DNA of 64,000 bases from the IMG/VR virus record IMGVR_UViG_3300012988_000016, positions 1-64,000 of that record. One strand, written 5' to 3'. Numbering within the stretch: position 1 is the stretch's first letter; each line of letters starts with the position of its first letter. The notes under the pieces were generated by a model. The model was not told where the DNA came from and did no database searches. It worked only from the letters and a program-made list of their open reading frames with translations. A program made the position numbers and the translations under genes. Shown here piece after piece: positions 1-15,306 of this stretch.

Positions 1-1197
1 CAATACTTTCAGAAACGCAACGCCCTTTATGGGGATGATCATTCGATCAATCCTTCCCAGAAGCTGTTTCGAACCCGCCTCATGAATAGATTGAGGACTT
101 TGGACCCCGAGAAAGCTACCAAAGTTCAGCAACTATTAGGGCCATTGGAGCACAAGGAGTACAAGGCACTCCATAAGCGCTGGTCTTCTCAATACAGTGC
201 TTGGGCTAATCGTAAGACCAAGCATGAAGAGGCCCTGCAGGCCTACATGAAGAATCCTCAAGGTAAACCTCCAGGAGGATTCGTTGAGGAAGCCCCACCA
301 GAGCCAGAAAAACCAGTCACAGGTTCTCCAGAAGAGGGCCCCGATAAGGCCTCAGATATTTGGGACGATGCTTTTTCCCAGAATCAACATGAGGATGCCA
401 GTCACGAAGCTGTCAAACAGGCTAGTGTTTTTACTTATTCTAGAACCCATGTGATGGGATCTACCAGCAAAACGAGTGTCTATCATGGTGTCGACCCGTA
501 CGCCTATGGGGCACCAGACTATCCAGGTTGGATGCAGCCGCACCAAAGAGACTTGGGAGAGTCTGATTGGACAACCATCTTGGCTGAGGCCCGTCAATTC
601 TTAGGGTCCAGCTTGTTGGATGTGGCCGACCCGGGGGTTGACCCAGATGCTCAATTGAGAGCAGCTCTGGATCTGGCCATCTACTCAAGTCGTTACAACG
701 GTGCAGTGAATGCCACCCAATATGCCAATCTTTTGGCCAAGTTGGCGGGCAAGCCGCAACCCAGCACGACCCAAACCCTTTTGACCGTAACTGAGAAGAG
801 CGGGTCCTCGGACAGCACTTCTTCTTTTAACAACACATTGAGTGCCACCATTGGAGAAGTGACCCCCATGAAATCATCACGCACCGTTCGTGAATTCGCA
901 GCTAAGGTTGCAAAGTTTGATGCCAAGACCGCGTTTGAGATGACCGACTTCGCGGATCGTTTGGCGGAGCAAGAGCAACAAGACAAGGAACAGGAGCAGA
1001 AAACTGCTGGTGAGCTGCCCCCTTGGCTGAAGAAGGACGACGACAAGGAAGAGAAGAAAGACGACAAAGAGGAGAAGAAGGAAGCTGCCAAGTACGCCTC
1101 ACTCAAGGCTCTTGTGATCAAGACTGCTTCTGAGACTCCGGCCGCCGCTCGCGCCGCTTTCCGGCCACTACTCCAGGCTCTCAAGAACCTGGGCTGA
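1..1197 (+). CDS. Head-associated low-complexity protein, 5'-partial
   Basis: The frame of the ATG at 82 is open back to base 1 (QYFQKRNALYGDD...), so the gene starts upstream of the window. Charged/Pro-rich; KQAS, KTAG, KEAA and KTAS motifs; lies upstream of the head genes. Confidence 0.75.
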   Translation, partial: QYFQKRNALYGDDHSINPSQKLFRTRLMNRLRTLDPEKATKVQQLLGPLEHKEYKALHKRWSSQYSAWANRKTKHEEALQAYMKNPQGKPPGGFVEEAPPEPEKPVTGSPEEGPDKASDIWDDAFSQNQHEDASHEAVKQASVFTYSRTHVMGSTSKTSVYHGVDPYAYGAPDYPGWMQPHQRDLGESDWTTILAEARQFLGSSLLDVADPGVDPDAQLRAALDLAIYSSRYNGAVNATQYANLLAKLAGKPQPSTTQTLLTVTEKSGSSDSTSSFNNTLSATIGEVTPMKSSRTVREFAAKVAKFDAKTAFEMTDFADRLAEQEQQDKEQEQKTAGELPPWLKKDDDKEEKKDDKEEKKEAAKYASLKALVIKTASETPAAARAAFRPLLQALKNLG

Positions 1198-1233
1198 ACC
1201 CTTTTTACCTAGAAGGACTTAGGAACCCCACAA

Positions 1234-1629
1234 ATGGCTAACAAACTTTCTGCAGAACAGTCAAAAAAGGCAAGCGAGATTCTCTCTGCTTTCGATCGCA
1301 TCGCTTCCGACATTCAAGCGAACTTCGCCTCTATGGGGTTGTCGTTCGACAATGCCAAGCAACTTGTCAACCACCTCGATAAGGTGGCGGATGAGGCAGA
1401 GGCTCACTTCTTCGGTCCAGAATCGATGGCTCGCCGTCAGGTGGTGGTCCTAAAGAGTGCCAAGGTGATTCAAAAGGATTCGGACGAATCTTACATGGAC
1501 ACCTTCAACAAGCCTATGGCGCCGCTCCAGACGGATGCTGATGAACCGTACATGAGTGCTTACGCCGACGATCAGTCGAGTGCCGTCAATAACGGTAAGT
1601 CGACAACGGGCCGTCCTCTCGCTCCCTGA
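1234..1629 (+). CDS. Hypothetical head-associated protein
   Basis: RBS-like TAGGA upstream; internal DSDESYM/DADEPYM repeat; head cluster position. Confidence 0.75.
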   Translation: MANKLSAEQSKKASEILSAFDRIASDIQANFASMGLSFDNAKQLVNHLDKVADEAEAHFFGPESMARRQVVVLKSAKVIQKDSDESYMDTFNKPMAPLQTDADEPYMSAYADDQSSAVNNGKSTTGRPLAP

Positions 1630-1655
1630 ACTAAGTTTTAGTAAGGGACGGGCAA

Positions 1656-2366
1656 GTGATCGATTACTGGAAATTGACCAAGGACTTCAAGCCTGGGGAC
1701 TTCGTACAGAAGTACATCCCCAGTCGAAGTGTCAGTCTATCGCCCTATGTGGGTCGCGTCACAGCGGTCCTACATGGGATCGGTTTTCTTGATGTCCAGT
1801 GGCCTTTTGACAATGAACGAGTCTCGCCTGAAGAGGTGGTGAAGGTCAACAAGGAATTCGCCGCCTACCTACCACCTAGTCTCAATTTCTCCTACTACCC
1901 TGGTTTGGAGCAAAAGAGAGAGGCTTCGAAGGGTCAATGGCGTTCAATCGAGCTGCCGGCTGGCTTCCATAAAGAGCTAGCTAGACTGTTCCACAAGGGT
2001 GCTCATGAGGTAAGGGCATATGACGAACTGTGGCATCGTTACGCCTCTTTCTCTGATGATACGGCTTTGAGGGACGAGGTGCAGAGATTTTATCGCTTTG
2101 CCTCCAACTCGGTAGACCTGTTCATCAGTGAGTTCGTCCGTAAGACGGCCACCTACTGGGCGGCTCAGAATCGTACCCACAGGGCCACCAGGGCTGAGGT
2201 TGATAACCGATGTCCCAATTGTCCTAGGTGCGGGACAGCGATGCGGAAAACCACCTATAAGATGTCTGAGGGACAGCGAACACGCTTGTTTGCTTGTCCC
2301 AAAGATTTGTACCTGATCAAGCAGGATGACATTCTTGGTCCAGGTGGGGAGCCTGTTGCATGGTGA
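1656..2366 (+). CDS. Hypothetical protein: N-terminal KOW/SH3-like region and C-terminal zinc ribbon
   Basis: FKPGDFV...GRVTAV...LDVQW at the N-terminus; CPRC...CPKD near the C-terminus; GTG start. Confidence 0.7.
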   Translation: MIDYWKLTKDFKPGDFVQKYIPSRSVSLSPYVGRVTAVLHGIGFLDVQWPFDNERVSPEEVVKVNKEFAAYLPPSLNFSYYPGLEQKREASKGQWRSIELPAGFHKELARLFHKGAHEVRAYDELWHRYASFSDDTALRDEVQRFYRFASNSVDLFISEFVRKTATYWAAQNRTHRATRAEVDNRCPNCPRCGTAMRKTTYKMSEGQRTRLFACPKDLYLIKQDDILGPGGEPVAW

Positions 2367-2746
2367 GATCAGCCAACATTCCAGGCACTGTCAAGAATTT
2401 CTTGACCATCCTAGTGGGCCGTCTCACTCGCTATGACAAACTTCTTCAGCAGAACGCCCTAAAGAAGGGTCGTCCAGACAACATCTATCGTCTTTCTCTT
2501 TGGCTGGGTGCCAAACAGGAAGCTGAGCAGTTGGTTCATTCCTATTTGAACGAATCAACTCCTGAGGCGCTAAATGCATTGAAGGCGGCCCTCATTAAGA
2601 AATTCCACGTGAACGATATGCCGCCTGTCAAGGCGGTAATCAAGATGATTGATGAGTTCATTGCGAGCGGTAAATCCCCCAAGTATGCCTCTGCCAATCG
2701 CCTTGTTGATCGATTCCTAGGTTTGCCTCTTTTCGAGGTGTTCTAA
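2360..2746 (+). CDS. Hypothetical alpha-helical protein
   Basis: Overlaps the upstream stop (coupled); ends KYASANRLVDRFLG. Confidence 0.7.
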   Translation: MVRSANIPGTVKNFLTILVGRLTRYDKLLQQNALKKGRPDNIYRLSLWLGAKQEAEQLVHSYLNESTPEALNALKAALIKKFHVNDMPPVKAVIKMIDEFIASGKSPKYASANRLVDRFLGLPLFEVF

Positions 2747-2749
2747 GTC

Positions 2750-4297
2750 ATGGCCTTCTCCAAGTACGCCAATGCGGCAGTGGTTCAGCCCGTCGTAACG
2801 ATGTCGACATGGGACGATTTGCGTGCCAAGTCGATGGGCGGAGCTTTTGCCAAGACAGCCAGCTTGGAAGTGGTCCAGAAATACGACCCCAAAGAATATC
2901 TGCTTACACACTGTACCATCATCGCGTCTGTCGATACCGAGAACGGTCCTGGTCAGTTGGGACGTACGTTTGATAACGGTTTCCAGATCGATCGTCGTTA
3001 TCAAGACTACTACATCACTACCAAGACGGCACAGTATGTCAACAGCAATCAGGATAGCTGGGAACGTAACTTGTTGCTCGCAACGTTCCGCACCTTCATT
3101 GGTGGTCAGAATTACGTAGAACATTTGCAAATACCTGAGTTGTCTAAGGGACGCATCATTGATGCGGCGGCTCGTGATCTTGGAGACACGGTCTACGTAG
3201 ACATCTTGGTAGCAACGGAACTCAAGCATTCCCCTCTGATTGCGGCCATCAAGTCTCAGCAACTACAGACTCTAAGTATGGGTTGCACGGTCGCCCACAC
3301 AACCTGCACACAATGTGGGAATGTGGCGGAAGACGAGACCCAGCTCTGTCAACACATCAAATACTCCAAGGGCAATCAGTTCATTGATGCTCTGGGGAGG
3401 ACTCGTAAGATTGCCGAGCTGTGCGGCCATGTGACAGATCCTCGCTCGGTCAAGTTTATTGAGGCCAGTTGGGTCGCCAATCCTGCTTTCAAGGGGGCGG
3501 TGGTTCGCAACATCCTAACTCCAGATGAATTGGCCAAGGTTGGTAACAAGGTGCAAGTCGCCTTCTCGATGCCCACTCAGGTTCCGGACGCTTCTCAATT
3601 CGGAAAAGCGGCTCATCTGCAGACCAACGATATGAGGGTTGTGAGTCGTGTTCAGAACCCTGCCATTGCTCCTCGTACTAGGATTTCTCTATCGGATCCT
3701 TCGCATCCATCACAGGATCAAGAACAATTTGAAGGGGCTGATCAAGCGGCTCCGGCCAACCCTAAGAAAGATCAGCAACCCATAGATAAGGCAGTCGATA
3801 GCCTGGCTGATCTGATCAAAGAGAAGGCGTTGGAGAAGGTTCGAGGTGAGATGAATCAAAAAGATCTCCCCCCTCGTGCCGATTTGAAAGAAAATCAGAA
3901 CAACACTTTGCTGCGTGAAGCGGTCCAAAAGAGCTCCTCTTGGAAGCGTCTAGCAGAGGTGGTGTTGGCCCAAACACCCAATCCAGAGATGGCTCGCAAG
4001 GTCTTGACTGGCTTGTTGTTGTTCAAGAATGGCGGTTGGCAAGCCGTCAAAGAAGCTTCGTACTCAGGAACGGAAGTACTGGCAATCTCACGCTTTCTGG
4101 ACAACATCCAGGGAGTTAGGATTGCAGGCGAACATCGAATCTACCGCACCGTTTTGACTGTTGGCGGGATGTTGGCTTACGGAGATGCAGATAGCTACTT
4201 GGCGGCTTGTCGTCGAGCAGTTGGACGAGAACTGACCACATCAGAGACCGATGCCTTGATCACAAAAGGCAAACTTTTCGATCTCTCGAAATCGTAA
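2750..4297 (+). CDS. Prohead (capsid maturation) serine protease with Cys-rich insertion
   Basis: YVEH (His), LSMG (Ser) and FIEASWVANPAF match HK97/herpes-type prohead protease motifs; CTQC...CQH...CGH insert; upstream of scaffold and capsid genes. Confidence 0.8.
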   Translation: MAFSKYANAAVVQPVVTMSTWDDLRAKSMGGAFAKTASLEVVQKYDPKEYLLTHCTIIASVDTENGPGQLGRTFDNGFQIDRRYQDYYITTKTAQYVNSNQDSWERNLLLATFRTFIGGQNYVEHLQIPELSKGRIIDAAARDLGDTVYVDILVATELKHSPLIAAIKSQQLQTLSMGCTVAHTTCTQCGNVAEDETQLCQHIKYSKGNQFIDALGRTRKIAELCGHVTDPRSVKFIEASWVANPAFKGAVVRNILTPDELAKVGNKVQVAFSMPTQVPDASQFGKAAHLQTNDMRVVSRVQNPAIAPRTRISLSDPSHPSQDQEQFEGADQAAPANPKKDQQPIDKAVDSLADLIKEKALEKVRGEMNQKDLPPRADLKENQNNTLLREAVQKSSSWKRLAEVVLAQTPNPEMARKVLTGLLLFKNGGWQAVKEASYSGTEVLAISRFLDNIQGVRIAGEHRIYRTVLTVGGMLAYGDADSYLAACRRAVGRELTTSETDALITKGKLFDLSKS

Positions 4298-4343
4298 ATC
4301 TCTTTATACCCCACTACAAGGCATAGGAAAGGGTGATCCCGTC

Positions 4344-5570
4344 ATGCGCGAACGCACCACCTGGAATCGTGAAAAGATTGCACAGAACGTCAGAATTGCA
4401 GAAGACCCCCGTGCAATGAACCAAGACCATTTGAGCCAACAACCGGCAGCCGACAAGTATGAGATCGGTGGACCTTCGGATTTCGCCGAAGATGTTCATC
4501 CATCCAACACTACTTGGAAAGCTGAGTACAGCGGTGGTGAAGTCAAGCGCAACGAGATCGGAATGCCCGAACTACGTGGTGACACTTTCAACCATGCTGA
4601 GAAGACAGCTGCTGAACAGCAAGAAGAAGCTGCTGCGGAAGATGAGGTGCTGGAGAAGAAGGCCTCTCTCTGCATCAAGCTGGCCAAGCGCTGCCTGTCC
4701 AAGAAGGCTTCTGAGTCGATGATTGAAGATCAAGCTCTCGCATTCATGCATATGCCTGATGCAGCTTTGATCGAATCTGTCAATCGTCTGGCAGCCGAAG
4801 AGGAAGACGAAGAAGAGCAGAGCAAACAAGCTCAGCAACAGCAAGCTCAAGACTCGGAAGAGCAGAAGCAAGCTGGTCAGATTCCTGAGAACTTCAAGAA
4901 GAAGGATGAGAAGGAAGAGGGCCAGGAGCAGCAGGCTAAGCAAGCCCAGCAGCAAGCTCAGCAGGCTGACGAAGAGCAGCAAAAGCAGGCTCAGCAGCAG
5001 GCTAAGGATGATGCGGAAGAGCAGAAGAAGCAAGCTGCCTACCAGGCTTTCAAGGCCGCTTGTGATGCGATGGCCCAGACGGGCTTGCAGCAGGATCAGG
5101 TTATGTCGTTGTTCCAGCAAGCTCTGGGTCAAGGACAGCAGCAACAGGCTCCCGCTCAGGTTCAGCAGCAGTTGGGTGATGACCAATTGCTGGACCAGAT
5201 GCTCCAAGACGAGGTTGGTCAGCCAGTGTTGGCCAATAGCTTCAATGACATTGAGTTGGACGGTATCTCGATGGATGTTGGTGAGACTCACATCGCCGCT
5301 TCCGAGGATGAGGTTCTCAAGACCTTGTTTGCTTCCAATCAAGAAGTCATCGAAGCACAGCAAGCAAACGCAATCCTGACTGGTATTCCGGTTCAGGCTT
5401 CGACTGTGCACACAACCCGTACGGCCTCTAAGCGTACGATTGGCACTCAGCCCTCAGTTGGTGTGTCGGCAATCGGTAGCGGTGGAAACGCTGCTACGGG
5501 CGGAGATATCGACAAGTTGTCGAGCCTCTGGCAGTCGGCTCCAGACGTGAAGGGCATCTTCGGCATCTGA
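4344..5570 (+). CDS. Capsid scaffolding protein
   Basis: Acidic, Gln/Ala-rich, helical; between protease and decoration/capsid genes; many KQA repeats. Confidence 0.7.
   Translation: MRERTTWNREKIAQNVRIAEDPRAMNQDHLSQQPAADKYEIGGPSDFAEDVHPSNTTWKAEYSGGEVKRNEIGMPELRGDTFNHAEKTAAEQQEEAAAEDEVLEKKASLCIKLAKRCLSKKASESMIEDQALAFMHMPDAALIESVNRLAAEEEDEEEQSKQAQQQQAQDSEEQKQAGQIPENFKKKDEKEEGQEQQAKQAQQQAQQADEEQQKQAQQQAKDDAEEQKKQAAYQAFKAACDAMAQTGLQQDQVMSLFQQALGQGQQQQAPAQVQQQLGDDQLLDQMLQDEVGQPVLANSFNDIELDGISMDVGETHIAASEDEVLKTLFASNQEVIEAQQANAILTGIPVQASTVHTTRTASKRTIGTQPSVGVSAIGSGGNAATGGDIDKLSSLWQSAPDVKGIFGI
4820..5040 (+). repeat. Imperfect Gln-rich (E/D)EEQxKQAQQQA repeats in the scaffold gene
   Basis: EQSKQAQQQQAQDSEEQKQAG...QAKQAQQQAQQADEEQQKQAQQQAKDDAEEQKKQAA. 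Confidence 0.8.
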
Positions 5571-5651
5571 ATTGCTGAAGACCTAATACTCAATATCTAG
5601 ATGTAAATTTCGTCCCCCAGCAACAAAGCCCATTTTTAGGAGAATTTCAAT

Positions 5652-6269
5652 ATGCCTCTATCTCTCGGCCAAGGCTCGGGTGACTTCAGGGAAACTTCCG
5701 GCAGAGTGCAGATCTTCCACGTCGGTCAACGCAACAGCGTTGGCGTCTTGACGGCGGACGCTTTCACTCAAGCCAACCCCGTGAACGTCACTGCCGGTGC
5801 CAACAAAAGCACAACCCTCGCAGGTATCAGCAAACTAGGCGTCTTGGGCGCCAGCTTCGCATTCACTCGTCCAGACGCTGGTAACGGCTTTCACGGTGGT
5901 CCTGCCCAGGTAGGCGCAGCCTACGTGGTTGGCCAGAAGCCACTCGGCCTCTTCATCAACGATTCGTTGGGTAACGCCTTCGAAAACACCCCTGGTGTTG
6001 CCTCTGGTCGTGGCCCATACCTCTGCGGCTTCGGTACAGTCGGCGTTTCGCTCTGGGAAACCCAGAACCTAGCTTCAGGTAGCGCGGCTCTGACCTACGC
6101 TCCTGGCGATGCCCTCTATGCTTCGGCAAACGGGTTCATCACCAACGTGGCGGCTGACGCCTATGAAAAGTTCGGTGCCCTCAGCGCCAACACACCCACC
6201 ATCGTCGGCATCCTCAAGGTAGCCCCCGATGCGAACAACACGCTCTTGGTATTCGATCTCCGCATCTGA
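5652..6269 (+). CDS. Head decoration/cement protein
   Basis: Small Gly/Ala beta-rich protein directly before the capsid gene; YAPGDALYASANGFIT...VGILK resembles beta-tulip decoration proteins; strong AGGAG RBS. Confidence 0.65.
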   Translation: MPLSLGQGSGDFRETSGRVQIFHVGQRNSVGVLTADAFTQANPVNVTAGANKSTTLAGISKLGVLGASFAFTRPDAGNGFHGGPAQVGAAYVVGQKPLGLFINDSLGNAFENTPGVASGRGPYLCGFGTVGVSLWETQNLASGSAALTYAPGDALYASANGFITNVAADAYEKFGALSANTPTIVGILKVAPDANNTLLVFDLRI

Positions 6270-6316
6270 GCGGGAAACTAGGCCTCTAAGGGAATTCCCG
6301 TAAGGAAAACAAAGCT

Positions 6317-7198
6317 ATGCCTCAGCAAGTAAGCAACGAAGTCAAGCAGCAGATCATCTCCGAGTACATCAAGACCGCCGCCGGTCGTGCCAAGCTCGCA
6401 GCCTCGATGATCCAACCCTTGCGTCTCCGCCGTGACTACACGGCCGTTGGTCGCAAGACCTTCTTGGTAGAACAACTACCGGACGGCGCATTGCCAATCT
6501 ACGACAAGGATCCGGAAGTTACGGCTTTCGTGGTCGGCGAAGAAGGCTCGAACATCTTGGCTATCCAGAAGCCACGTCGTGTCATCTTCCCGTTGTTCGA
6601 GATCGCCTCGAACCCCGAAATACCGTTGACCCAGATCAAGGAGCGTCGTTTCGACCTCATTGAACGCAGCCAGGACCTCGCCAAGGCGCAGATTCAGGCC
6701 GCTGAAGATGAGCGCGTGTTCGCCGTCCTCGACAGCATCGCTGTCTCGGGCTTCGACACCCTCCCCGGCCAGACCAACCCGGATATCGCCGTGGTGGCCC
6801 CGATCTCGCCAAGCGTCCTCGCCGATGCTTTCGCGGAAATCGAACGCCACGACCTCCGTGTTGCTCGTATCTACATGAACGCCACCGACTACGCGGACAT
6901 CCGCAAGTTCGGTCGCGACATCCTGGATATCGAGTCGCAGGCCACCCTGCTCAAGACAGGTTTGCAGGCCACCCTCTGGGGTGCTCAGATCATCACGTCG
7001 CGTCTGGTTCCGGCCGGCTTCGTGTACGTCTGCGGCGAGCCAGAGAACTTCGGTCGCTTCCCCGTCCGCACGGAACTGACCGTGTTGTCGGCGGATGACC
7101 CGAAGGCCCGCACAATTGGTTTCAGCTGTTTTCAGAACGTCGGCATAGGCGCATTCAACCCGCGTGCTATGACCCGTTTGGTCGTCACCCGCATCTGA
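6317..7198 (+). CDS. Major capsid protein (HK97 fold)
   Basis: 293 aa; FEIASNPEIPLTQIKERRFDLIERSQDLAKAQIQAAEDERVF, IYMNATDYADI and LWGAQII match capsid motifs; strong codon bias; AAGGA RBS; terminator follows. Confidence 0.88.
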   Translation: MPQQVSNEVKQQIISEYIKTAAGRAKLAASMIQPLRLRRDYTAVGRKTFLVEQLPDGALPIYDKDPEVTAFVVGEEGSNILAIQKPRRVIFPLFEIASNPEIPLTQIKERRFDLIERSQDLAKAQIQAAEDERVFAVLDSIAVSGFDTLPGQTNPDIAVVAPISPSVLADAFAEIERHDLRVARIYMNATDYADIRKFGRDILDIESQATLLKTGLQATLWGAQIITSRLVPAGFVYVCGEPENFGRFPVRTELTVLSADDPKARTIGFSCFQNVGIGAFNPRAMTRLVVTRI

Positions 7199-7224
7199 AC
7201 CCAATAAGCCTAACGGCTTGATCG

Positions 7225-7262
7225 AAAACGCCTCCAGGGTTATCTCTGGGGGCGTTTTTCTT
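7225..7262 (+). terminator. Intrinsic terminator after the capsid gene
   Basis: AAAACGCCTCCAGGG-TTAT-CTCTGGGGGCGTTTT stem-loop followed by a T-rich tract. Confidence 0.85.
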
Positions 7263-7299
7263 TGGAGCTTAAGTCACCGTTATGCTACGATGTGAGATC

Positions 7300-8229
7300 A
7301 TGAGATCTATATCGTGCCCAGTCGCCCCTGAAGAACTACGTAGCTGGTATCTAGTCGAGAAACTCACAGACGATCAAATAGCTGATCGTTTAGGAGCCCC
7401 TACAACAGTCAAACGAGTCAGATCTTGGCGTCGCCGATTTGGTATTGAGACCATTTGTCGCACAGAAAGGCATCTTATTGTGCCAATCGAAGGTCGACTA
7501 CGATCGGTGCTTGTCGGCTCAATGTTAGGGGATGGTCGAATCTCAAAAAGCTTGAATGTAGCTCGATACTGTGAGCTTCACTCTGAAGCTCAGAAATCAT
7601 ACTTGGATTGGAAAGTCCAGGAATGGGGACCTTGGGTAAAGACTGAGCCTCTATACATCTCCAGAGACTTTCCAGCTTGGCGTTTCGAAACTGTCTCCCA
7701 CACTCAGCTTCTCTCCTGGCATGCCCTGTTCTATCCCAATCCTGGGCCAAAACAGCTGCAACCAGAAGTAGTTGATTTGGTGGATTACTTGGCTCTAGCA
7801 ATATGGTTCATGGATGACGGTTCTTCTGGCTGGTGGCCACGCATCACGTTTGGTATGCAGCCGTCAAGTCATGCAATAGCATTGACCATCTTCGAGAGAC
7901 TTGGATTCAAGCCTCGTTGGGAGGTGTGTGATGGTAACACAGGTAACTTCCACTTTGAGGGTGAAGATCAGGCGGAACGTTTCATCGCCCTGATTACGCC
8001 CCATATGCCAGAGTGTATGCACTACAAGTTGTCGTTTGGATTCCAGGGGCCTCAGTACCAACTACGCAAAAAACTCACATTTGAACGCCTTAAGGAGCTG
8101 GTCGATTGCGGCACTCCAATCAAACGCATGGCGAAGATTCTGGATGAAGCACCCACAACGGTGACAAGGCATCTCGAACGCCTAGGTATCGAACATCCCA
8201 GAACCATAGGCAGACCGCCCAGCAAATGA
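7300..8229 (+). CDS. Free-standing LAGLIDADG homing endonuclease with terminal HTH domains
   Basis: LVGSMLGDGRI and LAIWFMDDGS motifs; HTH-like segments at both ends; probable start is the ATG at 7300 (track gives 7282). Confidence 0.85.
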   Translation: MRSISCPVAPEELRSWYLVEKLTDDQIADRLGAPTTVKRVRSWRRRFGIETICRTERHLIVPIEGRLRSVLVGSMLGDGRISKSLNVARYCELHSEAQKSYLDWKVQEWGPWVKTEPLYISRDFPAWRFETVSHTQLLSWHALFYPNPGPKQLQPEVVDLVDYLALAIWFMDDGSSGWWPRITFGMQPSSHAIALTIFERLGFKPRWEVCDGNTGNFHFEGEDQAERFIALITPHMPECMHYKLSFGFQGPQYQLRKKLTFERLKELVDCGTPIKRMAKILDEAPTTVTRHLERLGIEHPRTIGRPPSK

Positions 8230-9412
8230 CCCTTTTATGCCTCAACTTAGGGGCATGATCCACTATAGCTACGATTATCGAATCCCAGAGTCCTATGATC
8301 GTAGGAAATTGGCTGAGGCGGAAAACATCCTGGCACTTCTGGCCGAATTTCGTCGAGTAGTGGATTCGATGGAGAAGAGGTGGGTCGAACTTAGTGCCGC
8401 TCAGGATGATTCTTTGACTACACTCCGAGCCTCCGTCTATCTGCCAGGGACGTTCGAAGTCCTCAATCGGGTGGGGGCTTATCGCATATTCTGGGGGATT
8501 TTGCAGCAATACAAGATCTCTTCAAGTGCCGATCGAAAGCTGATTGAGCAAGCTTCGAAGGAGTTTTCCAAGAATCGCATCCAGAGAGTTAAACCTGATG
8601 TAGCGCTTGAAGTCCTCAAGAAGAAGGTAGACACCTATCGGTCGTATGCGGATGCGGCGGATCGAGTGATCAAGAAGGGAGAGTTGCATAACGATGAGGC
8701 CTCAGGCACGACTGAGACGGCCGGATGTTTCACGCTCGTCAATACGGGCGACTTTTCGGCCCAGCAGATGGCTGATGTGGCCAAGGTGGTCGATCGAGCA
8801 AGCGCTCTGATCAAAGCCAAAGGGTTCGGCAAGATCTGCTACGGTACCATTCAGGTGACCAATACGGTGAATCGTAGCTCCAATGTGTTGGCCTTCTACG
8901 TTGCTAGAACAGACGAGTTTTTCGTACGTGGTAACCTCAAAGGCAAGCAAGGACCGGCTATCAGTACGATCATTCATGAGTTGGGCCACCGCCTACATCT
9001 CAAGTTCCTGAAGAGCAAAGACGCTGAGATTGAGACTCTCTACAAAACTCTTCTTAACGGGGATGAAACGGCCTTCAGAGAGGCCCTGAACGACAAGGCC
9101 AATTGGCCCAAGCCTGGAGATCTTCACAAGGACAAGGACGGCAAGGTGTATGAGGTGGAAAAGGTAGTGCTCAATCGAGCTTATGATTGGGTGGTCCAGG
9201 TTCATCTCAAAGAGGAGCCTACCATCAAGGCATCAATCTCTCTGAGTGGTTGGATCAACGTCAAAGGCCTCAAGAAAGAAACCTTTGTCAGTCCCTACGC
9301 TCGTACCAGCTATGTAGAGAACTTCGCTGAGATGTTCGATCACTACGTTGAAGAGACCTTGCCTGATGGGCAGGTGCAGATGTTGGAAGCCGTCATCAAA
9401 TGACCCTTTTAT
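8224..9412 (+). repeat. Identical 15-bp direct repeats flanking the metallopeptidase gene
   Basis: AAATGACCCTTTTAT at 8224-8238 and 9398-9412. Confidence 0.85.
8255..9403 (+). CDS. Zincin-like metallopeptidase (anthrax lethal factor/MPTase-like)
   Basis: IIHELGHRLH (HExxH) plus distal SPYARTSYVENFAEMF; probable start ATG 8255 after an AGGGG RBS. Confidence 0.7.
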   Translation: MIHYSYDYRIPESYDRRKLAEAENILALLAEFRRVVDSMEKRWVELSAAQDDSLTTLRASVYLPGTFEVLNRVGAYRIFWGILQQYKISSSADRKLIEQASKEFSKNRIQRVKPDVALEVLKKKVDTYRSYADAADRVIKKGELHNDEASGTTETAGCFTLVNTGDFSAQQMADVAKVVDRASALIKAKGFGKICYGTIQVTNTVNRSSNVLAFYVARTDEFFVRGNLKGKQGPAISTIIHELGHRLHLKFLKSKDAEIETLYKTLLNGDETAFREALNDKANWPKPGDLHKDKDGKVYEVEKVVLNRAYDWVVQVHLKEEPTIKASISLSGWINVKGLKKETFVSPYARTSYVENFAEMFDHYVEETLPDGQVQMLEAVIK

Positions 9413-9429
9413 AGCCTTACCCAGATATC

Positions 9430-10032
9430 ATGTCGCAAGCCAAAAATATCGTCCGCCGGTTTACAGCTCAGAACGACATTCGGTCAAAGCTTGATAAAGC
9501 TAAGACCAGTCTGAACACCATTGCTGCTAAATACATGCGGGACGGCACTCACGACACTAAGGCTATTTTGGAAGCTTTTGATGATGTGGTGGACCAGATC
9601 AAGGACGCATCTCGTCAAATTGACGATACTGCCGCCAAGAAGCACCTTGATCATGTTCTTTCAGCAATCGAACAGGGAATGGATGCTGCTAGGGCCCAAG
9701 ACCAACGTGGGATTGAGGCTGCCGTTCGAAACGCCGTTCATTTCCTCCAAGGTACTGCCGACTACTTGACCGAAAATCCCGAACTGCAAGAGAAGAAGGA
9801 ACAGTTGGCCGATCTGTTGAATCGAAACATTCTTCCAAAGGTAGATAAGGGTGCCGATCGCAGTTTCACTGAGGCTGTCAACCTCTGTCAAGACCTCGCT
9901 GTAGACGAGAGCCCTAGGCTACGTCCTTGGTTCAACGAGCTGGGTCAGGTTATCCAGAGAATGGTTGACGCTAGGCAGGACCTTCGGGCCGCCACCGCAC
10001 AAATGGACAAGATGTTGTTGTCCAAGGCTTAA
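9430..10032 (+). CDS. Hypothetical alpha-helical protein
   Basis: Clean ORF with upstream CCTTTTAT; begins MSQAKNIVRRFTAQ. Confidence 0.75.
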   Translation: MSQAKNIVRRFTAQNDIRSKLDKAKTSLNTIAAKYMRDGTHDTKAILEAFDDVVDQIKDASRQIDDTAAKKHLDHVLSAIEQGMDAARAQDQRGIEAAVRNAVHFLQGTADYLTENPELQEKKEQLADLLNRNILPKVDKGADRSFTEAVNLCQDLAVDESPRLRPWFNELGQVIQRMVDARQDLRAATAQMDKMLLSKA

Positions 10033-10085
10033 ATAGCCGCCGTAATTGGCCTATATGGCCATCCGATGACGGTGTACAGCACCGT

Positions 10086-10421
10086 ATGCCTGACGATCTC
10101 GTCGCCAAATCAGCTGAAGAACTGTTACAAATAAAGCTAACACTGGAATCCGACATCGATTCCATCCGAGCTCAAATTGACGCCGCTCAGGCGAAGGCGA
10201 GAGAGACGGGTGAGTTCGCCGATTCGGACTGGTGGGGTAGGGCCAAGTGGGCACTGAAGAGCAAGGGTCGCCAATGTCAGCAGATCCAGCTGCTGTTGCG
10301 ACAGAAGAACAAGGCCGCTCAAGGGAGTCTGGAGAACTGCTTCATGACCACAGCTCGTGAGCTGTTGCCAGCCGAGCAGTTCCAGGCCATCCTGGATACC
10401 GCTAGGTTGAAGGTAGGGTGA
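10086..10421 (+). CDS. Hypothetical protein
   Basis: Helical; DSDWWGRAKWAL motif; tightly linked to ung. Confidence 0.7.
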   Translation: MPDDLVAKSAEELLQIKLTLESDIDSIRAQIDAAQAKARETGEFADSDWWGRAKWALKSKGRQCQQIQLLLRQKNKAAQGSLENCFMTTARELLPAEQFQAILDTARLKVG

Positions 10422-10424
10422 GGA

Positions 10425-11075
10425 TTGGATTCTTCTTGGAAGCAACGCCTGTCGGGTGAATTCACCAAGCCATACTTCAAGGAGTTGGTTGAGTTCGTTG
10501 CCATTGAGCGGAAGCGTGGTCCTGTTTTTCCTCCCCCACAAGATACGTTCAATTGTTTCAAGCTGCCCTTCGATGATGTCAAAGTGGTGATCTTGGGGCA
10601 AGATCCGTACCATGGGGCAGGTCAGGCCCATGGGCTTAGTTTCTCGGTTCAACCAGGCACCCAACTACCTCCTAGCTTGCGCAATATTTTCAAGGAGCTG
10701 GTGGAAGACCTAGAGATCCAGAAACCAAAGACCGGTTGGTTGGAGCCATGGTGTCGCCAAGGAGTTCTGTTGCTTAACACCACTTTGACGGTCCGAGCTC
10801 ATCAGGCGGGTTCACATCAGGGGCAGGGCTGGGAACAGTTCACTGATGAGGTGATTCGAACCCTCAGCTCCAGAGAGAAACCGGTCATCTTCGTCCTTTG
10901 GGGCCGTCATGCGAGGGCCAAGAAGGACCTGATTGACTCCAGGCATACCATCATCGAGTCGGCCCACCCTTCCCCTATGTCGGCCTCTAGCGGGTTCTTT
11001 GGATCCAAGCCTTTTTCGAAAGTGAATGCGGCCCTTCAGCAGATCGGGGAGGCTCCTATCGACTGGGCTATTTGA
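10425..11075 (+). CDS. ung: Uracil-DNA glycosylase, family 1
   Basis: GQDPYH, HGLSFS, PPSLRNI, GVLLLN, FVLWG and HPSP motifs all present. Confidence 0.97.
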   Translation: MDSSWKQRLSGEFTKPYFKELVEFVAIERKRGPVFPPPQDTFNCFKLPFDDVKVVILGQDPYHGAGQAHGLSFSVQPGTQLPPSLRNIFKELVEDLEIQKPKTGWLEPWCRQGVLLLNTTLTVRAHQAGSHQGQGWEQFTDEVIRTLSSREKPVIFVLWGRHARAKKDLIDSRHTIIESAHPSPMSASSGFFGSKPFSKVNAALQQIGEAPIDWAI

Positions 11076-11135
11076 CCGACTGGCCTATCTTTTTCAACCT
11101 CCTTAATCCTTTATGATTTGAGCCGTTATAGGAAC

Positions 11136-11783
11136 ATGGCTGAAATCAACGCGACAGAAAAGTCTCCGAAAGAAGCCTCTGCCAAAGGCGTGGCAGCTAG
11201 GTTTAAGGCGGCAGCCAACTTCACGATGCCTAGGTCGATCTACCTACCTGCAGAGGTGAGGGATCAAGCTCCGCTCACCCCAGAGGGCACGGATTTGGCG
11301 ATCTGGCAGTGGGAAGGTCAAGGCAAGTTCTACGCGATTGCGTTTGCGGCCAAGCAGAACAAGCCTCTTTGGAACTACTCTTTCAAGAGCGACGCCAATC
11401 GTCAACGTCAGATCGATGAAACGGTCAAATCTCGTAAGCTGAGCTTGGAATTCAAGCAGAAGCGTGTGGATGACCGTAAGAACCACGTTCACGGCTTTGT
11501 GGTGGGCGACATCCTGTATAGCACGTGGGGTTACGACCAAACGAACGTGAACTTCTTTCAGGTGGTCGAAGTCAAGGGTAAAGTGATCGTCACGAGGCCG
11601 ATTGGTTCAAAGGTCGTTCGTGAGTCCCAGGGAGCTAGCTATGTTGTTGCTGTGCCAAACAGCTTCCATGGTCCCGCGGAACGTTCGATTCCTGGCCCCA
11701 ATGGGACTAAGATCGACGGTCATCATGCCAGCAAATGGGATGGCAAAGAGAAGTATGAGACGTCTTCTGGTTGGGGGCACTGA
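11136..11783 (+). CDS. Hypothetical protein with a GDILYSTWGYDQTN motif
   Basis: Probable start ATG 11136 after a TAGGA RBS; N-terminal KEASAKGVAARFKAAA leader. Confidence 0.7.
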   Translation: MAEINATEKSPKEASAKGVAARFKAAANFTMPRSIYLPAEVRDQAPLTPEGTDLAIWQWEGQGKFYAIAFAAKQNKPLWNYSFKSDANRQRQIDETVKSRKLSLEFKQKRVDDRKNHVHGFVVGDILYSTWGYDQTNVNFFQVVEVKGKVIVTRPIGSKVVRESQGASYVVAVPNSFHGPAERSIPGPNGTKIDGHHASKWDGKEKYETSSGWGH

Positions 11784-11789
11784 GGCCTT

Positions 11790-11963
11790 GTGATCTCGCC
11801 CCGTTCCGTTGTAGCCCGCTTCAAAGAGGCCGTGATCCGCAAAGAAAAGGGTCAATACTGCGTGCGCTCGCCTGACAACGGTTCTTGGAGCGGCGGTTGC
11901 TACGATTCGAAGGGTGAAGCCGAGAAGCGCTTGGAACAAGTCGAATGGTTCAAGCATAAGTGA
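11790..11963 (+). CDS. Small protein (57 aa) missed by the ORF track
   Basis: GTG start after GAGG; MISPRSVVARFKEAVIRKEKGQYCVRSPDNGSWSGGCYDSKGEAEKRLEQVEWFKHK; fills the gap between neighbouring genes. Confidence 0.75.
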   Translation: MISPRSVVARFKEAVIRKEKGQYCVRSPDNGSWSGGCYDSKGEAEKRLEQVEWFKHK

Positions 11964-12002
11964 TGATTTGATTTCCTGCCCGCAATCTACTAGCATTGGT
12001 AG

Positions 12003-12221
12003 ATGCGTCAGCCTCAAATAAGCGATTCGGTACACTATCAGGCCTATGGGACTCCAGGGGGAGAATACCTGTCGGTCCCCCGAGCGGCCATCGTCACAGA
12101 AGTCTTGCCAGATGGGAAGGTGCGACTCTGTATCCTAAACCCAACCGGCATCTTCTTTAGCCCACCCTTGGACTACGATGAGGACGGTAAACCAGGTAGC
12201 TGGCGTTACCCTCCCGCCTGA
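12003..12221 (+). CDS. Small SH3-like hypothetical protein
   Basis: VHY...RAAIVTEV...VRLCILNPTG...GSWRYPP pattern. Confidence 0.7.
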   Translation: MRQPQISDSVHYQAYGTPGGEYLSVPRAAIVTEVLPDGKVRLCILNPTGIFFSPPLDYDEDGKPGSWRYPPA

Positions 12222-12288
12222 TTATCCATTTATCTACACTCTCCTTTAGAGGCCTGCTTCGTCTTTGGCTTCTGGGAGATGTATCTAA

Positions 12289-13449
12289 ATGAGTCAACCA
12301 ATCAAATTCACACCTGGCACTCCGATTCGCTTCATTGCAACCCGTACTTTCTCTGTGGGGTTGCCTAACAATCAGAGTTTCAACATCTCCAAAGGTATGG
12401 AGTTGGACTTCGATGGTACGAGCGTAACGCTGGACGGGTACCCTCCAGTGCCAGTCCCTAAGTTGCGCGGTACCATATCTATGGGTTGGATTGTCCCAGA
12501 AGCTGAATACGATCCGAACATCACGTTACAACCCATCTCGGCTGGGATCTCGATGCGGAATCCTGATGGTGGCAATCCGATGGATCCTCAAAAGCCCAGA
12601 ATAGCGGTCACGACTGTAGACGCTGAGGAACGAGAGGTTCGCAACGTCCAGGCTCACGCTCAAAAGACTCGACAACTCAATACCGCACCTCGTGGGCAAC
12701 GTCACGCCAGTGCGGCTGACTCACAAGAAGGGATTCCGGTTCGGACACTTTCTTCAGCTACTGTCCACAGAACCAATCTTGATGATGCTGGGGCGGCCAT
12801 TCGAGAGGCTGAGAAGATCAAGGTCCAGCCAGGCGTGGGCCGTACCCGTGAAGATCTGGCCAATAGTTTGCCAGAGGGTGAGCGAGAAGCTTATTTGGCT
12901 GAAGTTGAGGCATTTCGATCAGCTAGGGAGGTTGAAGAGGACCCTAGGGCATTGCGGGAGCGTGCCGCCAATCAGGCGATCCTGGAACGTCGAGTGGTCG
13001 GACGGGCTCCGGCTTTGAAAAATCAGGACAAGGACGGCTTCAACATCACCAATACGGTGGGGAATGGGATTGAGACTTTCGACCTGGGAGGTACCGGTGG
13101 AGCTGGTGCCGATCATGTCGAAGTGGTTGAGATTGATGGTATCAAGATCACCAATACCAATGGTCCACGCAAAAAGGTAGCTGCCAAACAGACGGCCCCA
13201 GCCCCCACCAGGGTAGTGGCGACCGTAAATCCTCCAGCTACAGACTCTAGGCGTCGCATCGCTAAGTCGATTTGCCCAGACTTTCCGGATAATTACAACT
13301 TTGACGACGCTCCTCGTAAGAAAGTTGCCCGTCTACAGGCCGATTATGAGGATCGTCCGGACGTGATTCGGGCAGTAGCAGCGGCCGAGACAGATCTAGA
13401 GGTCCGTAATCGGTTGGTTGAGGAGTTCCCAGAGGCGTTCGTCGGATAA
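12289..13449 (+). CDS. Hypothetical protein
   Basis: 386-aa ORF with a GGAGA RBS; no recognisable family. Confidence 0.75.
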   Translation: MSQPIKFTPGTPIRFIATRTFSVGLPNNQSFNISKGMELDFDGTSVTLDGYPPVPVPKLRGTISMGWIVPEAEYDPNITLQPISAGISMRNPDGGNPMDPQKPRIAVTTVDAEEREVRNVQAHAQKTRQLNTAPRGQRHASAADSQEGIPVRTLSSATVHRTNLDDAGAAIREAEKIKVQPGVGRTREDLANSLPEGEREAYLAEVEAFRSAREVEEDPRALRERAANQAILERRVVGRAPALKNQDKDGFNITNTVGNGIETFDLGGTGGAGADHVEVVEIDGIKITNTNGPRKKVAAKQTAPAPTRVVATVNPPATDSRRRIAKSICPDFPDNYNFDDAPRKKVARLQADYEDRPDVIRAVAAAETDLEVRNRLVEEFPEAFVG

Positions 13450-13472
13450 CCCGAATTTCCCTAGTCTTCTTG

Positions 13473-13508
13473 TGCACGCCCTTTAGGCGAATCCTAAAAG
13501 GGCGTGTA
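13473..13508 (+). promoter_or_regulatory. Hairpin sequestering the RBS and start codon
   Basis: TGCACGCCCTTTAGG-CGAAT-CCTAAAAGGGCGTGTA: 15 bp with one bulge, ending on the A of ATG 13508. Confidence 0.6.
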
Positions 13509-15004
13509 TGACTGATCCTACTGACAGGTGCCTCAATCGAGGTCATTCAAAAACAGCGTCCCCTATTCTCTATCTTCAAGAGGAGCTTGGGGACGCTCGT
13601 TTGCGTTGCGATCAGTTGGTTCGATACGTGGATGAGGCTGTGAAACTGGTCGAACGGTCCGATCAAAAGGATCATCTGTTCGAGGTGGCGGGCCATCTGA
13701 TCAGGGGGATCCCTGAGTCGGCATTCAAACTACAGAAGGCTTTGCAGGCTGTAGCATTGGCGGCGGATCGTATCGATTACGAAGAACTCAAGCAAGAGTT
13801 ACGCCCTGAAAAGGTAGAAGAGTTAGAACGGGTCCTACAAGAGGTTAGGATTCGGACCGTCCCACATCGTTCGTTTCCAACCCAGGATATTGCTATGCAC
13901 CCCAAACAAGCCGCTCAACAGCTCCGAGAATTCGTCCGTATTGCCCGTGAAGAAGGTCAAATACCTGTACACGAGGTTGCCGCTTTCTTGACCAAACTTG
14001 ACCCGCCAGGCGTCACCGCCTCTCAAGAGATAACGGCAGCTGATAAGTTGGAGAAGCTGGCTGAGATGTTGGAAGATCCCAACCAAGAGCCGTTGAGCAG
14101 GGTTCGTTTGGCGGCGGTGGTTCGTCGGGTAGCGATGGAAGCTACGGTTGATGATGCGGTACGCTTGGCGGCCCAACAGCCGGATGAGGAAGGGCAGTCC
14201 AAGACAGCTCTTCAACTCTCCCCATCTATTCCTGCCTTGTTTGAAGGTATCAAGGACAAGGCCATGAGGGCCATGAGGGCTGCTAATTCGGAGCATTGGC
14301 GCCCCGCTTTCATGCAACTCTTCTTCATCGTTGACGACATTGGGACACTCTTGGTTCAGATGGGTGGCTTGGACACCACCAAATCGGAAGCTCTCAAACG
14401 AGAGATTCGTCAGGCGCTCCCCACCATTAGTCATGGAAAAGGGGACCCCGCTGAAATGGCTCACATGGCCTCAGAAGGGCTTGCTTGGGACGTGGAAGCC
14501 ACCGAGGAGAAGCGGACCAAGTTTGAGGAAGGCAAGCCAGCTGACCCTACTGAAAACATGGACAAGGACGATGCTGCCAAGTGGAAAGACAACACTGACC
14601 AGTATGGTGACAAGTTCAAGGCAGCCCGTTTCCAAGAAGGGGAGTCGGCCGACCCTACTCAGAACATGAGTCCGGAGGATGCCAAAGAGTGGGAAGAACA
14701 GAACGAACAGAACAAGGACAACTTCAAGCAAGCGGGTGGAGTTGAAGACTCGTTCGTTCGGCGTCTCAAGAAGCACGAAAAAGAGATCGGTATGGGGAGC
14801 TTGTCGGCTTTGATGCAGAAGAGTGGTTGGCAAGAATCTGTAAGAGAGATGGCCAGCAAGTTGTTTCAGATCGAAGGTAAACTGCCCAAAGAACAGGCGG
14901 ATCGGAAGGCCAAAGATTGGGTCAAGCCGTCTATGTTTCAAGCCATCAAGGACGGGCTGACTGCAAAGACGGCCTCTGTCGATGATCTGATCTGGAAGGC
15001 CTGA
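13508..15004 (+). CDS. Modular head-associated hypothetical protein
   Basis: Helical segments separated by KTA/RLAA/KAA/KQA; contains a 36-aa tandem repeat. Confidence 0.75.
   Translation: MTDPTDRCLNRGHSKTASPILYLQEELGDARLRCDQLVRYVDEAVKLVERSDQKDHLFEVAGHLIRGIPESAFKLQKALQAVALAADRIDYEELKQELRPEKVEELERVLQEVRIRTVPHRSFPTQDIAMHPKQAAQQLREFVRIAREEGQIPVHEVAAFLTKLDPPGVTASQEITAADKLEKLAEMLEDPNQEPLSRVRLAAVVRRVAMEATVDDAVRLAAQQPDEEGQSKTALQLSPSIPALFEGIKDKAMRAMRAANSEHWRPAFMQLFFIVDDIGTLLVQMGGLDTTKSEALKREIRQALPTISHGKGDPAEMAHMASEGLAWDVEATEEKRTKFEEGKPADPTENMDKDDAAKWKDNTDQYGDKFKAARFQEGESADPTQNMSPEDAKEWEEQNEQNKDNFKQAGGVEDSFVRRLKKHEKEIGMGSLSALMQKSGWQESVREMASKLFQIEGKLPKEQADRKAKDWVKPSMFQAIKDGLTAKTASVDDLIWKA
14519..14734 (+). 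repeat. Two copies of a 36-aa tandem repeat
   Basis: KFEEGKPADPTENMDKDDAAKWKDNTDQYGDKFKAA / RFQEGESADPTQNMSPEDAKEWEEQNEQNKDNFKQA. Confidence 0.9.
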
Positions 15005-15007
15005 TTG

Positions 15008-15304
15008 ATGTCTAACAAATACTCCTACGACCTCACTGCGGCGGCCCCTTCTTTCGACAAGCTCTCAAAGGCCATGAAGGAAAGCGTCGATAGCTTGATT
15101 GAGACACGAGTCAAGATCCGGAAAGTTCATCAGATGCTGTCTGATGTGGGCAACGATGCTTCTGGTGTGTCGTACACCGATAATTACGATGACCCAGATG
15201 TACGTCGCGTACAGAAGATACTGTATGAGATGGATCACGAGATAGGCACAGCCTTCAATGCTGTTGAGAGTTTGGAACGAAATCTGAAAAAGAAGGCCAA
15301 ATAA
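15008..15304 (+). CDS. Hypothetical coiled-coil protein
   Basis: Packed between neighbouring genes; heptad-like composition. Confidence 0.7.
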   Translation: MSNKYSYDLTAAAPSFDKLSKAMKESVDSLIETRVKIRKVHQMLSDVGNDASGVSYTDNYDDPDVRRVQKILYEMDHEIGTAFNAVESLERNLKKKAK

Positions 15305-15306
15305 CG

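Follow-up and report, generated by a model that had tools for sequence, protein, structure and literature searches.

A portable terminal peptide tag on diverse proteins of huge phages

A short basic peptide (roughly R-V-A-x-R-F/Y-K/L-x-A) is attached to the ends of many otherwise unrelated proteins of a 308,895-bp phage genome (IMG/VR record IMGVR_UViG_3300012988_000016) and its relatives. It behaves like an interchangeable address label, most likely for loading proteins into the capsid, although this function is inferred from sequence alone. The original prediction, made on the first 64,000 nucleotides of the record (referred to as the window), claimed that four unrelated proteins share an amphipathic V-x-x-R-F helix at a terminus, usually next to a K-x-A site, and that this is a new capsid-packaging tag comparable to that of T4. 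The four peptides and their shared, non-random character were confirmed, while the capsid-targeting interpretation is only partly supported. All four peptides lie in the head region of the window, among the following features.

1..1197 (+), 3' part of the 944-aa gene that follows the portal gene; its last 31 residues (1102-1194) are a second kind of terminal label (type 2), preceded by KYAS; the full-length protein, read from the near-identical contig L045, also has a type-1 tag near residue 66.
2693..2722 (+), C-terminal type-1 tag (ANRLVDRFLG; residues 112-121, 7 residues from the end) of the 128-aa protein 2360-2746, preceded by KYAS (2681-2692).
2750..4297 (+), prohead (head maturation) protease, 515 aa, with a catalytic region, a disordered linker and a helical C-terminal domain (381-515) in the structural model, and two conserved [KR]-x-A motifs in its N-terminal region.
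4344..5570 (+), acidic, Q/E-rich scaffold-like protein, judged from its composition and its position between the protease and capsid genes.
5652..6269 (+), probable capsid decoration protein, by position in the gene order (as gp26 of phage G); no family hit.
6317..7198 (+), major capsid protein, HK97 fold, phage-G type (PF05065, phrog_2522; PDB 6WKK gp27, E = 9e-61).
7282..8229 (+), LAGLIDADG homing endonuclease gene (PF03161, E = 1.4e-21) directly after the capsid gene, opening a variable stretch of genes (the island) that holds the tagged genes.
8237..9403 (+), HExxH (zincin-like) protein with weak Peptidase_Mx hits, untagged here.
9442..9471 (+), N-terminal type-1 tag (KNIVRRFTAQ) of the 200-aa helical protein 9430-10032.
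11184..11213 (+), N-terminal type-1 tag (KGVAARFKAA) of the 215-aa protein 11136-11783.
11802..11831 (+), N-terminal type-1 tag (RSVVARFKEA) of the 57-aa protein 11790-11963.

Apart from the tag, the four proteins show no significant similarity to each other. Whether the motif merely occurs at background frequency was tested on our own gene call of the whole genome (483 genes). [VIL][VA]xRF occurs 16 times against 6.8 expected from composition, however, 8 of these lie in the first 30 residues of proteins against 1.04 expected. A position weight matrix trained only on other genomes finds 6 hits of at least 14 bits in this genome against 0.4 in shuffled proteins; the 11136 tag scores 19.8 bits, while the 9430 tag, the weakest of the four, falls below the 10-bit listing threshold. 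The excess is replicated in a 485-kb relative, LR745208, with 7 strict hits in the first 30 residues against 1.45 expected, and 13 against 4.2 when Y is allowed. The 9430 tag resembles the KN-VV-x-RF subclass seen in LR745208, and its protein has an orthologue only in L045. Codons differ freely between copies (four Val codons, five Arg codons and both Phe codons), so selection acts on the protein. The consensus is longer and more basic than the V-x-x-R-F originally proposed, about [L-A]-[KR]-R-V-[AV]-x-R-[FYHW]-[KL]-x-A, roughly 13 residues. The proposed proximity to K-x-A holds for three of the four peptides (RFKAA and RFKEA overlap the tag, and KYA|S lies just before the C-terminal tag) but not for the 9430 protein. 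The proposed amphipathicity is not supported statistically, as the helical hydrophobic moments of the tags are reached by 6-46% of shuffles. An AlphaFold2 model nevertheless places the 11136 tag in a separate helix (residues 16-27), with lower confidence than, and apart from, a confidently predicted globular domain (33-215), for which Foldseek found no PDB match. Pfam and PHROG scans of the carriers were mostly empty.

The tag is a movable module, which sits at N-termini, C-termini or domain junctions, and which orthologues gain, lose or duplicate. The orthologue of the untagged HExxH protein in contig L046 starts with two tandem tags and its homologue in LR745208 with one. Orthologues of the 11136 protein have one or two tags. 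Orthologues of the 2360 protein keep PKY[AS] followed by the tag, and one has two tandem C-terminal copies. Orthologues of the 11790 protein keep the tag and an invariant Ala before the conserved VIRKEKG core. A 1009-aa protein (genome positions 128228-131257) carries tags near residues 6, 532 and 924, and in LR745208 a separate tagged protein aligns to its residues 531-929 and another to residues 161-285. The tag is also only one of at least three interchangeable labels in this clade: 120 homologues of the 11136 protein share one globular domain but carry type 1 (R-V-A-x-R-F/Y), type 2 (L-R-S-K-L-I-R-L-A-H-x-N-P...L-L-P-L-L) or type 3 (S-x-L-W-K-V) labels at the N-terminus, or none.

Tagged genes are associated with the head module. 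Three lie within 5 kb downstream of the capsid gene, one sits just before the protease gene, and the protein that follows the portal gene is tagged as well. In 79 related loci, 25 of 31 tagged ORFs start within 4 kb downstream of the capsid gene. However, only about 10 of 133 genes in the variable island are tagged at the N-terminus, which rules out that almost every island gene is a carrier. The carriers at 117355, 128228 and 131281, and a weak one at 114893, lie among non-structural genes, 110-130 kb from the head genes, and lack the motif seen upstream of head genes; no late promoter shared by the distant tagged genes was found. The carriers include enzyme-like proteins of the kind phages package: one is a zincin-like HExxH polyprotein, directly upstream of which lies a topoisomerase IB gene.

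A conserved Ala, often in K-x-A, marks the junction between tag and protein. Ala occupies position +7 of the tag in 20 of 48 seed tags and, by inspection, in most listed tagged members of the 11136 family. [KR]-x-A is kept at two sites of the protease N-terminus in most of about 40 full-length orthologues and in Tunturi_5, and the scaffold-like protein has the strongest K-x-A excess in the genome (11 against 3.6 expected from its own composition, z = 4.4). K-x-A alone is not a sufficient site, however, since the K-T-A in the N-arm of the capsid protein lies in a segment conserved with phage G and is therefore probably not cut. The protease matches phrog_18299 and phrog_2774 and the proteases of phage G, Tunturi_5 and actinophages, while no Pfam family was hit at E <= 0.01; it gave no hit to the T4-type (gp21) family.

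We propose that the peptide is the core of a basic, probably helical, portable docking module, fused by a short linker to either end of diverse proteins. Its most likely role would be to tether these proteins to an inner component of the assembling prohead (scaffold core, shell interior, protease or portal), so that they would be enclosed and possibly later delivered with the DNA. The label would then be cut off by the prohead protease at the Ala junction, often [KR]-x-A, which lies after an N-terminal label or before a C-terminal one. Our analysis establishes that the tag exists, is under protein-level selection, is modular, is enriched at termini and is linked to head genes; that tagged proteins enter capsids, that the peptide is necessary and sufficient for this, that it is cleaved, and which component receives it are inferences, made without a virion proteome for this phage or any tagged relative, and the only indirect support for a necessary and sufficient role in incorporation is the linkage to head genes. 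We consider this reading about as likely as not. A complex prediction of the C-terminal domain of the protease (residues 344-515, with alignment) with the 90-aa tagged protein, a pair chosen because the domain is absent from the proteases of the untagged relatives Tunturi_5 and phage G, scored 0.13 against a mark of 0.32, which counts neither for nor against binding, and no receptor was identified from this single pair. Three label types coexist in one head module, which a model of one tag and one receptor does not explain.

Several alternatives were considered. The peptide may be a docking motif for some other phage hub, such as a chaperone, an unfoldase, a replication or transcription factory or a membrane site, the clustering near the capsid gene reflecting only a recombination hot spot. 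Several carriers at 114-131 kb lie next to a ClpX-like AAA+ gene and a topoisomerase IB gene, and the island is highly variable and holds homing endonucleases. This is possible but unlikely, as the tag is on the protein that follows the portal gene and on a small protein just before the protease gene, and the C-terminal version sits behind a conserved PKYA motif, like other head-protein termini. A ClpX-type degradation or adaptor tag in particular was dropped, since LR745208 has many tags but no homologue of the ClpX-like protein. Less likely still, the peptide may be only an extended recognition or propeptide element for the prohead protease, which would keep enzymes inactive until cleavage without directing incorporation. 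The tag often runs straight into K-x-A (RFKxA), and the protease N-terminus has a related F-x-x-[KR]-x-A pattern. However, the spacing between R-F and the next K-x-A varies from 0 to 2 residues, some tags have no K-x-A, tandem and C-terminal copies are hard to explain as a cleavage site alone, and other candidate sites (KYA|S, KTA|S) lack the V-x-x-R-F part.

It is doubtful that the peptide is a generic basic helix that binds nucleic acid, with carriers riding or acting on phage DNA and the terminal position being incidental. All tags carry net positive charge, the matrix also hits, as internal false positives, DNA-binding helices (a C-terminal helix of an apparently HU-like protein and an HTH segment), and a topoisomerase IB has a tag-like segment, so a generic basic-helix function remains possible. 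Strict conservation of the aromatic and the small residues, the strong terminal bias, and interchange with the non-basic type-2 and type-3 labels on the same domain all point to a specific protein partner, and the topoisomerase segment is conserved inside its homologue and may be part of that fold. A twin-arginine (Tat) signal peptide was rejected because, although many tags read R-R-V-A-x-R-F/Y-L, what follows is polar or a linker instead of a hydrophobic stretch, and many copies have a single Arg before the Val. A DNA-level repeat (a promoter or ribosome-site cassette, or the end of a mobile element) or chance is refuted by the codon variation; the enrichment is far above chance and replicated, and the upstream DNA of the 15 phage G and head-region genes inspected is not conserved, even though a rare CC(T)TTTAT motif lies upstream of several of the head-region genes.

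The closest known system is the capsid targeting sequence of the T4 internal proteins IPI-III and Alt (Mullaney and Black 1996, as cited in PMC5694885 and PMC9024508), likewise a 10-20-residue N-terminal peptide shared by unrelated proteins of one phage and followed by a maturation cleavage site (here only a candidate), with cargo that includes enzymes and cargo genes in variable regions. The sequence is unrelated, however, and the proposed cleavage rule differs (Ala at the junction here). In T4, the junction residue is Glu. The present tag also occurs at C-termini, in tandem and at internal junctions, and coexists with at least two other label types; function is shown by experiment in T4 and only inferred here. 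In P1, the N-terminal 30 residues of DarB direct a large enzyme, and a reporter, into the capsid (PMC9024508), but this signal is described for one protein, is not a consensus shared by many, and has no apparent sequence relation. SPN3US and phiKZ-type giant phages have many internal or ejected head proteins processed by the prohead protease (PMC5694885, PMC10052503), though their N-terminal propeptides are mostly over 100 residues and specific to paralogue families, and are not a short portable motif. Encapsulin cargo-loading peptides and microcompartment encapsulation peptides are short terminal peptides on a flexible linker that load diverse enzymes into a protein shell; in encapsulins the shell has the HK97 fold and the cargo gene lies next to the shell gene, as the tagged genes do here (0-5 kb downstream of the capsid gene). 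Their consensus differs, those peptides are not known to be removed, and those shells are not known to carry DNA, a portal or a protease, while portal, protease and capsid genes of a tailed phage are present here. No description of the present tag was found in the literature searched.

Phage G, a cultured relative of the same capsid and protease lineage, has its own N-terminal tag (MKRLIKK) on at least 10 otherwise different proteins, such as gp13, gp17 and gp38, again with varied codons, which makes the idea testable. Its pattern is basic-hydrophobic-hydrophobic-x-basic, without an aromatic residue at the position of F/Y, and the gp13 copy runs on into A-A-R-Y. We found no paper describing this peptide, and its function is equally unknown.

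If the label works as inferred, a simple sequence rule would list the proteins carried in the capsids of a large, widespread and almost wholly uncultured clade of huge phages (504 capsid-gene relatives in IMG/VR, on contigs up to 529 kb). Such proteins are usually the first weapons against host defences, and the rule would also give a handle for loading foreign proteins into very large capsids. Label swapping on one cargo domain would be a clear natural example of address-label shuffling in viruses. More tentatively, and less likely than not, the clade may use a combinatorial address-label system, in which at least three terminal peptides are swapped among cargo genes by recombination, direct enzymes to different sites or at different copy numbers inside giant capsids, and are removed by a protease that cuts after Ala. 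If so, the injected proteome of hundreds of uncultured phages could be read from sequence alone.

K-[TY]-A is not enriched over the whole genome (41 against 36.7 expected), it is only concentrated in the head module, where 13 of the 41 lie in the first 15 kb.

The 64-kb window is the first part of a single 308,895-bp contig, and its coordinates 1-16,000 hold a head module, all on the + strand. The contig begins inside the gene that follows the portal gene and its ends do not overlap, so the genome is probably incomplete or cut arbitrarily. The near-identical IMG/VR contig L045 supplies the portal gene, which lies just upstream (176-2008 of L045), and the full 944-aa protein encoded after it. 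The head module and the variable stretch of genes that follows the capsid gene (hereafter, the island) are arranged as follows:

1-1197 (+), 3' part of the large gene that follows the portal gene
three small genes (+), the last at 2360-2746
2750-4297 (+), head maturation protease (phrog_18299)
4344-5570 (+), acidic, Q/E-rich scaffold-like protein
5652-6269 (+), probable decoration protein
6317-7198 (+), HK97-fold major capsid protein (PF05065, phrog_2522), matching gp27 of Bacillus phage G (PDB 6WKK) at E = 9e-61
7282-8229 (+), LAGLIDADG endonuclease, first gene of the island
8237-9403 (+), HExxH protein
9430, 10086, 10425, 11136, 11790 and 12003 (+), starts of the further genes of the island

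IMG/VR holds 504 contigs with a related capsid gene, of which the best 80 are at least 92% identical, on contigs of up to 529 kb.

Relatives of the phage by capsid protein (genome size; capsid identity)
Uncultured phage LR745208: 485 kb; 83%
Tunturiibacter phage Tunturi_5: 309 kb; 47%
Phage G: 498 kb; 38%
Mycobacteriophages, Gordonia and Rhodococcus phages: 135-165 kb; about 27%

The original prediction held that a V-x-x-R-F tag is shared by the C-terminus of the 2360 protein and the N-termini of the 9430, 11136 and 11790 proteins. This observation is correct: all four peptides are present at the stated places, and the four proteins are otherwise unrelated. Among the 483 genes called on the whole genome, [VIL][VA]xRF occurs 16 times against 6.8 expected, but 8 of these lie within the first 30 residues against 1.04 expected. 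Besides the three N-terminal cases in the window, carriers sit at genome coordinates 117355 (239 aa, two tandem copies), 128228 (1009 aa, copies near residues 6, 532 and 924), 131281 (90 aa) and, more weakly, 114893. In LR745208 the same pattern occurs 7 times in the first 30 residues against 1.45 expected, and with Y allowed 13 times against 4.2 expected from the internal rate (p = 4e-4), often in tandem, while Tunturi_5 shows no excess. A matrix trained only on LR745208 and IMG/VR loci, with no sequence of this genome, gives 6 hits of at least 14 bits here against 0.4 in shuffled proteins. Positions outside the pattern first proposed also carry information: Arg just before the Val, Ala or Asp at x, Leu or Lys after the aromatic residue, and Ala three residues after it. 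The codons of the copies differ freely, so the conservation is at the protein level.

The tag is a movable module. The HExxH protein has no tag in this genome, however, its orthologue in the related locus L046 starts with two tandem tags and its LR745208 homologue with one. Orthologues of the 11136 protein carry one or two tags, with F, Y, H or W at the aromatic position, and orthologues of the 11790 protein keep the tag and an invariant Ala before the conserved core. The C-terminal case is genuine: orthologues of the 2360 protein all end in PKY[AS] followed by the tag, and one has two tandem C-terminal copies. In LR745208, a separate protein that starts with tags aligns to residues 531-929 of the 1009-aa protein and another tagged protein aligns to residues 161-285; an internal tag sits at the 531 junction.

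A search of a large protein collection found 161 homologues of the 11136 protein (phrog_37844), of which the best 120 were listed and examined. These share one globular domain but differ at the N-terminus. In an AlphaFold2 model of the 11136 protein (window 11136-11783), the tag is predicted as helix 16-27 at pLDDT about 70, followed by a short linker and a domain at pLDDT above 93. The globular domain of this widespread family has a confident model (pLDDT 91), for which Foldseek found no match among the solved structures of the PDB.

N-terminal labels among the best 120 of 161 homologues of the 11136 protein (form; number)
Type 1: R-V-A-x-R-[FYWH]-[KL]-[EQ]-A; 44 strict, more in relaxed form
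Type 2: about 25 residues, L-R-S-K-L-I-R-L-A-H-x-N-P...L-L-P-L-L; about 12, estimated by inspection
Type 3: S-x-L-W-K-V; about 10, estimated by inspection
Longer form: a longer helical extension ending in type 1; about 8, estimated by inspection
None: the domain starts directly; about 9, estimated by inspection

The type-2 label (in fuller form L-R-S-K-L-I-R-L-A-H-x-N-P-x-L-R-x-x-L-L-P-L-L) is a second portable label. It lies at the C-terminus of the protein that follows the portal gene, both here (window 1102-1194) and in four related loci, and is also found in eight proteins of LR745208 (loci L003-L043; record positions 20283, 30891, 274678, 351543, 351838, 398171, 431502 and 433231), at or near the N-terminus in seven and internal in one, besides some homologues of the 11136 protein. 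The third label (M-I-P-x-x-S-x-L-W-K-V) is N-terminal on the same domain as that of the 11136 protein (L151 10001-10636; proteins P0005, P0012, P0026, P0030 and P0039); in one case it is followed by a type-1 tag, and it is seen in tandem on another protein (in locus L083). In L151, another member of the clade, labels of types 1, 2 and 3 occur together in one head module.

Tagged genes are linked to the head module. In the window, three lie within 5 kb downstream of the capsid gene and one lies directly before the protease gene. The full-length protein that follows the portal gene has a type-1 tag near residue 66, in addition to its C-terminal type-2 label. In the related loci, 25 of 31 ORFs with a tag in their first 45 residues start within 4 kb downstream of the capsid gene, the ORF counts being 25 of 477 there, 3 of 735 upstream and 3 of 386 further downstream. 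The stretch between the capsid gene and the next conserved gene varies from 0.9 to 7.4 kb and differs in content between phages whose capsid proteins are over 92% identical; only 10 of its 133 called genes are tagged at the N-terminus. A rare motif, CC(T)TTTAT, lies about 24-62 nt before the start codons of the genes at 1234, 8237, 9430, 11136, 12289 and 17267 of the window. It has 41 copies in the genome on both strands, and 11 genes have it within 80 nt upstream against 2.6 expected, 7 of them in the first 18 kb (one of those lies inside the truncated first gene). It is a candidate late promoter element.

At the junction between tag and protein, Ala at the seventh position after the Val is present in 20 of 48 seed tags and, by inspection, in most listed tagged members of the 11136 family. 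Type-2 labels on the same domain also tend to end in [KR]-[EQ]-A, while C-terminal labels are preceded by Y-A or K-Y-A. The N-terminus of the protease (window 2750-2866) keeps [KR]-x-A at two places in most of about 40 full-length orthologues, including Tunturi_5, although the surrounding residues vary. K-x-A is more over-represented in the scaffold-like protein than in any other protein of the genome, about threefold (11 against 3.6, z = 4.4), whereas K-[TY]-A is not enriched genome-wide, although 13 of its 41 copies lie in the first 15 kb. These candidate sites fit a protease that cuts after Ala and removes the labels, which is inferred from sequence alone; the K-T-A in the capsid N-arm lies in a segment conserved with phage G and is unlikely to be cut. 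In several relatives the protease ORF is 900-1030 aa long, with an inserted endonuclease-like segment (a weak Hom_end_hint hit in L151) which looks like an intein (L046 5122-7959, L075 5123-7903, L085 4737-7841, L110 4921-7878, L115 5094-7919, L121 4694-7642 and L151 2167-4896).

Searches with the carriers returned no family for most of them. The 1009-aa protein has an HExxH motif (HELGH) and a weak, sub-threshold zincin-type hit. The gene directly upstream of it (L044 15234-16226; genome 127234-128226) encodes a topoisomerase IB (PF01028, E = 1e-27), whose homologue in LR745208 carries an extra N-terminal domain and lies in the head module. A ClpX-like AAA+ protein is encoded next to a tagged gene (L044 4191-5318; genome 116191-117318).

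We propose that the tag is a docking peptide that tethers diverse proteins to an inner component of the prohead and is probably removed afterwards, in parallel to the T4 capsid targeting sequence and the N-terminal signal of P1 DarB (PMC5694885, PMC9024508). While the peptide, its conservation as protein sequence, its modularity and its linkage to head genes are shown by the analysis, docking, loading into capsids and removal are inferred, and our confidence in the proposal is moderate; the original reading of the tag as a capsid-targeting signal is partly supported. A receptor was not found. The helical C-terminal domain of the protease was the first candidate, since it is present in tagged phages and absent from Tunturi_5 and phage G, but a single complex prediction decided neither for nor against it. 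This domain (residues 381-515; window 3890-4297) is confidently modelled as all-helical, follows a disordered linker of about 90 residues and is present in this clade and LR745208. Rival readings are that the peptide is a docking motif for a hub unrelated to the capsid, a protease propeptide without a targeting role, or a generic nucleic-acid-binding helix. A ClpX tag is disfavoured, a Tat signal is excluded by the lack of a hydrophobic stretch, and a DNA-level repeat is excluded by the codon variation.

The concept of a capsid-targeting peptide is known from T4 and P1. This motif, its breadth across a large uncultured clade, its use at either end and in tandem, and the interchange of several label types on one cargo domain appear to be undescribed in the literature that could be searched.

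In phage G, several proteins of the head region start with M-K-R-L-I-[KS]-K, and across the genome (NC_023719, loci L126-L150) at least ten otherwise different proteins begin this way, with starts at 11937, 16055, 28218, 39023, 73330, 147651, 179219, 245985, 254652 and 446697. Their codons vary and their upstream DNA is not conserved. Literature searches found no paper that mentions this peptide. It has the same pattern as the tag studied here (basic, hydrophobic, hydrophobic, x, basic), and in gp13 it continues into A-A-R-Y. Three of the proteins give weak, sub-threshold hits to ADP-ribosyltransferase folds, and one has a SLOG domain. As phage G is cultured, the whole idea is directly testable.

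Between the tagged genes of the island, the untagged protein encoded at 10425-11075 contains G-Q-D-P-Y-H, a hallmark of family-1 uracil-DNA glycosylases, to which it may be related on the basis of this motif alone.
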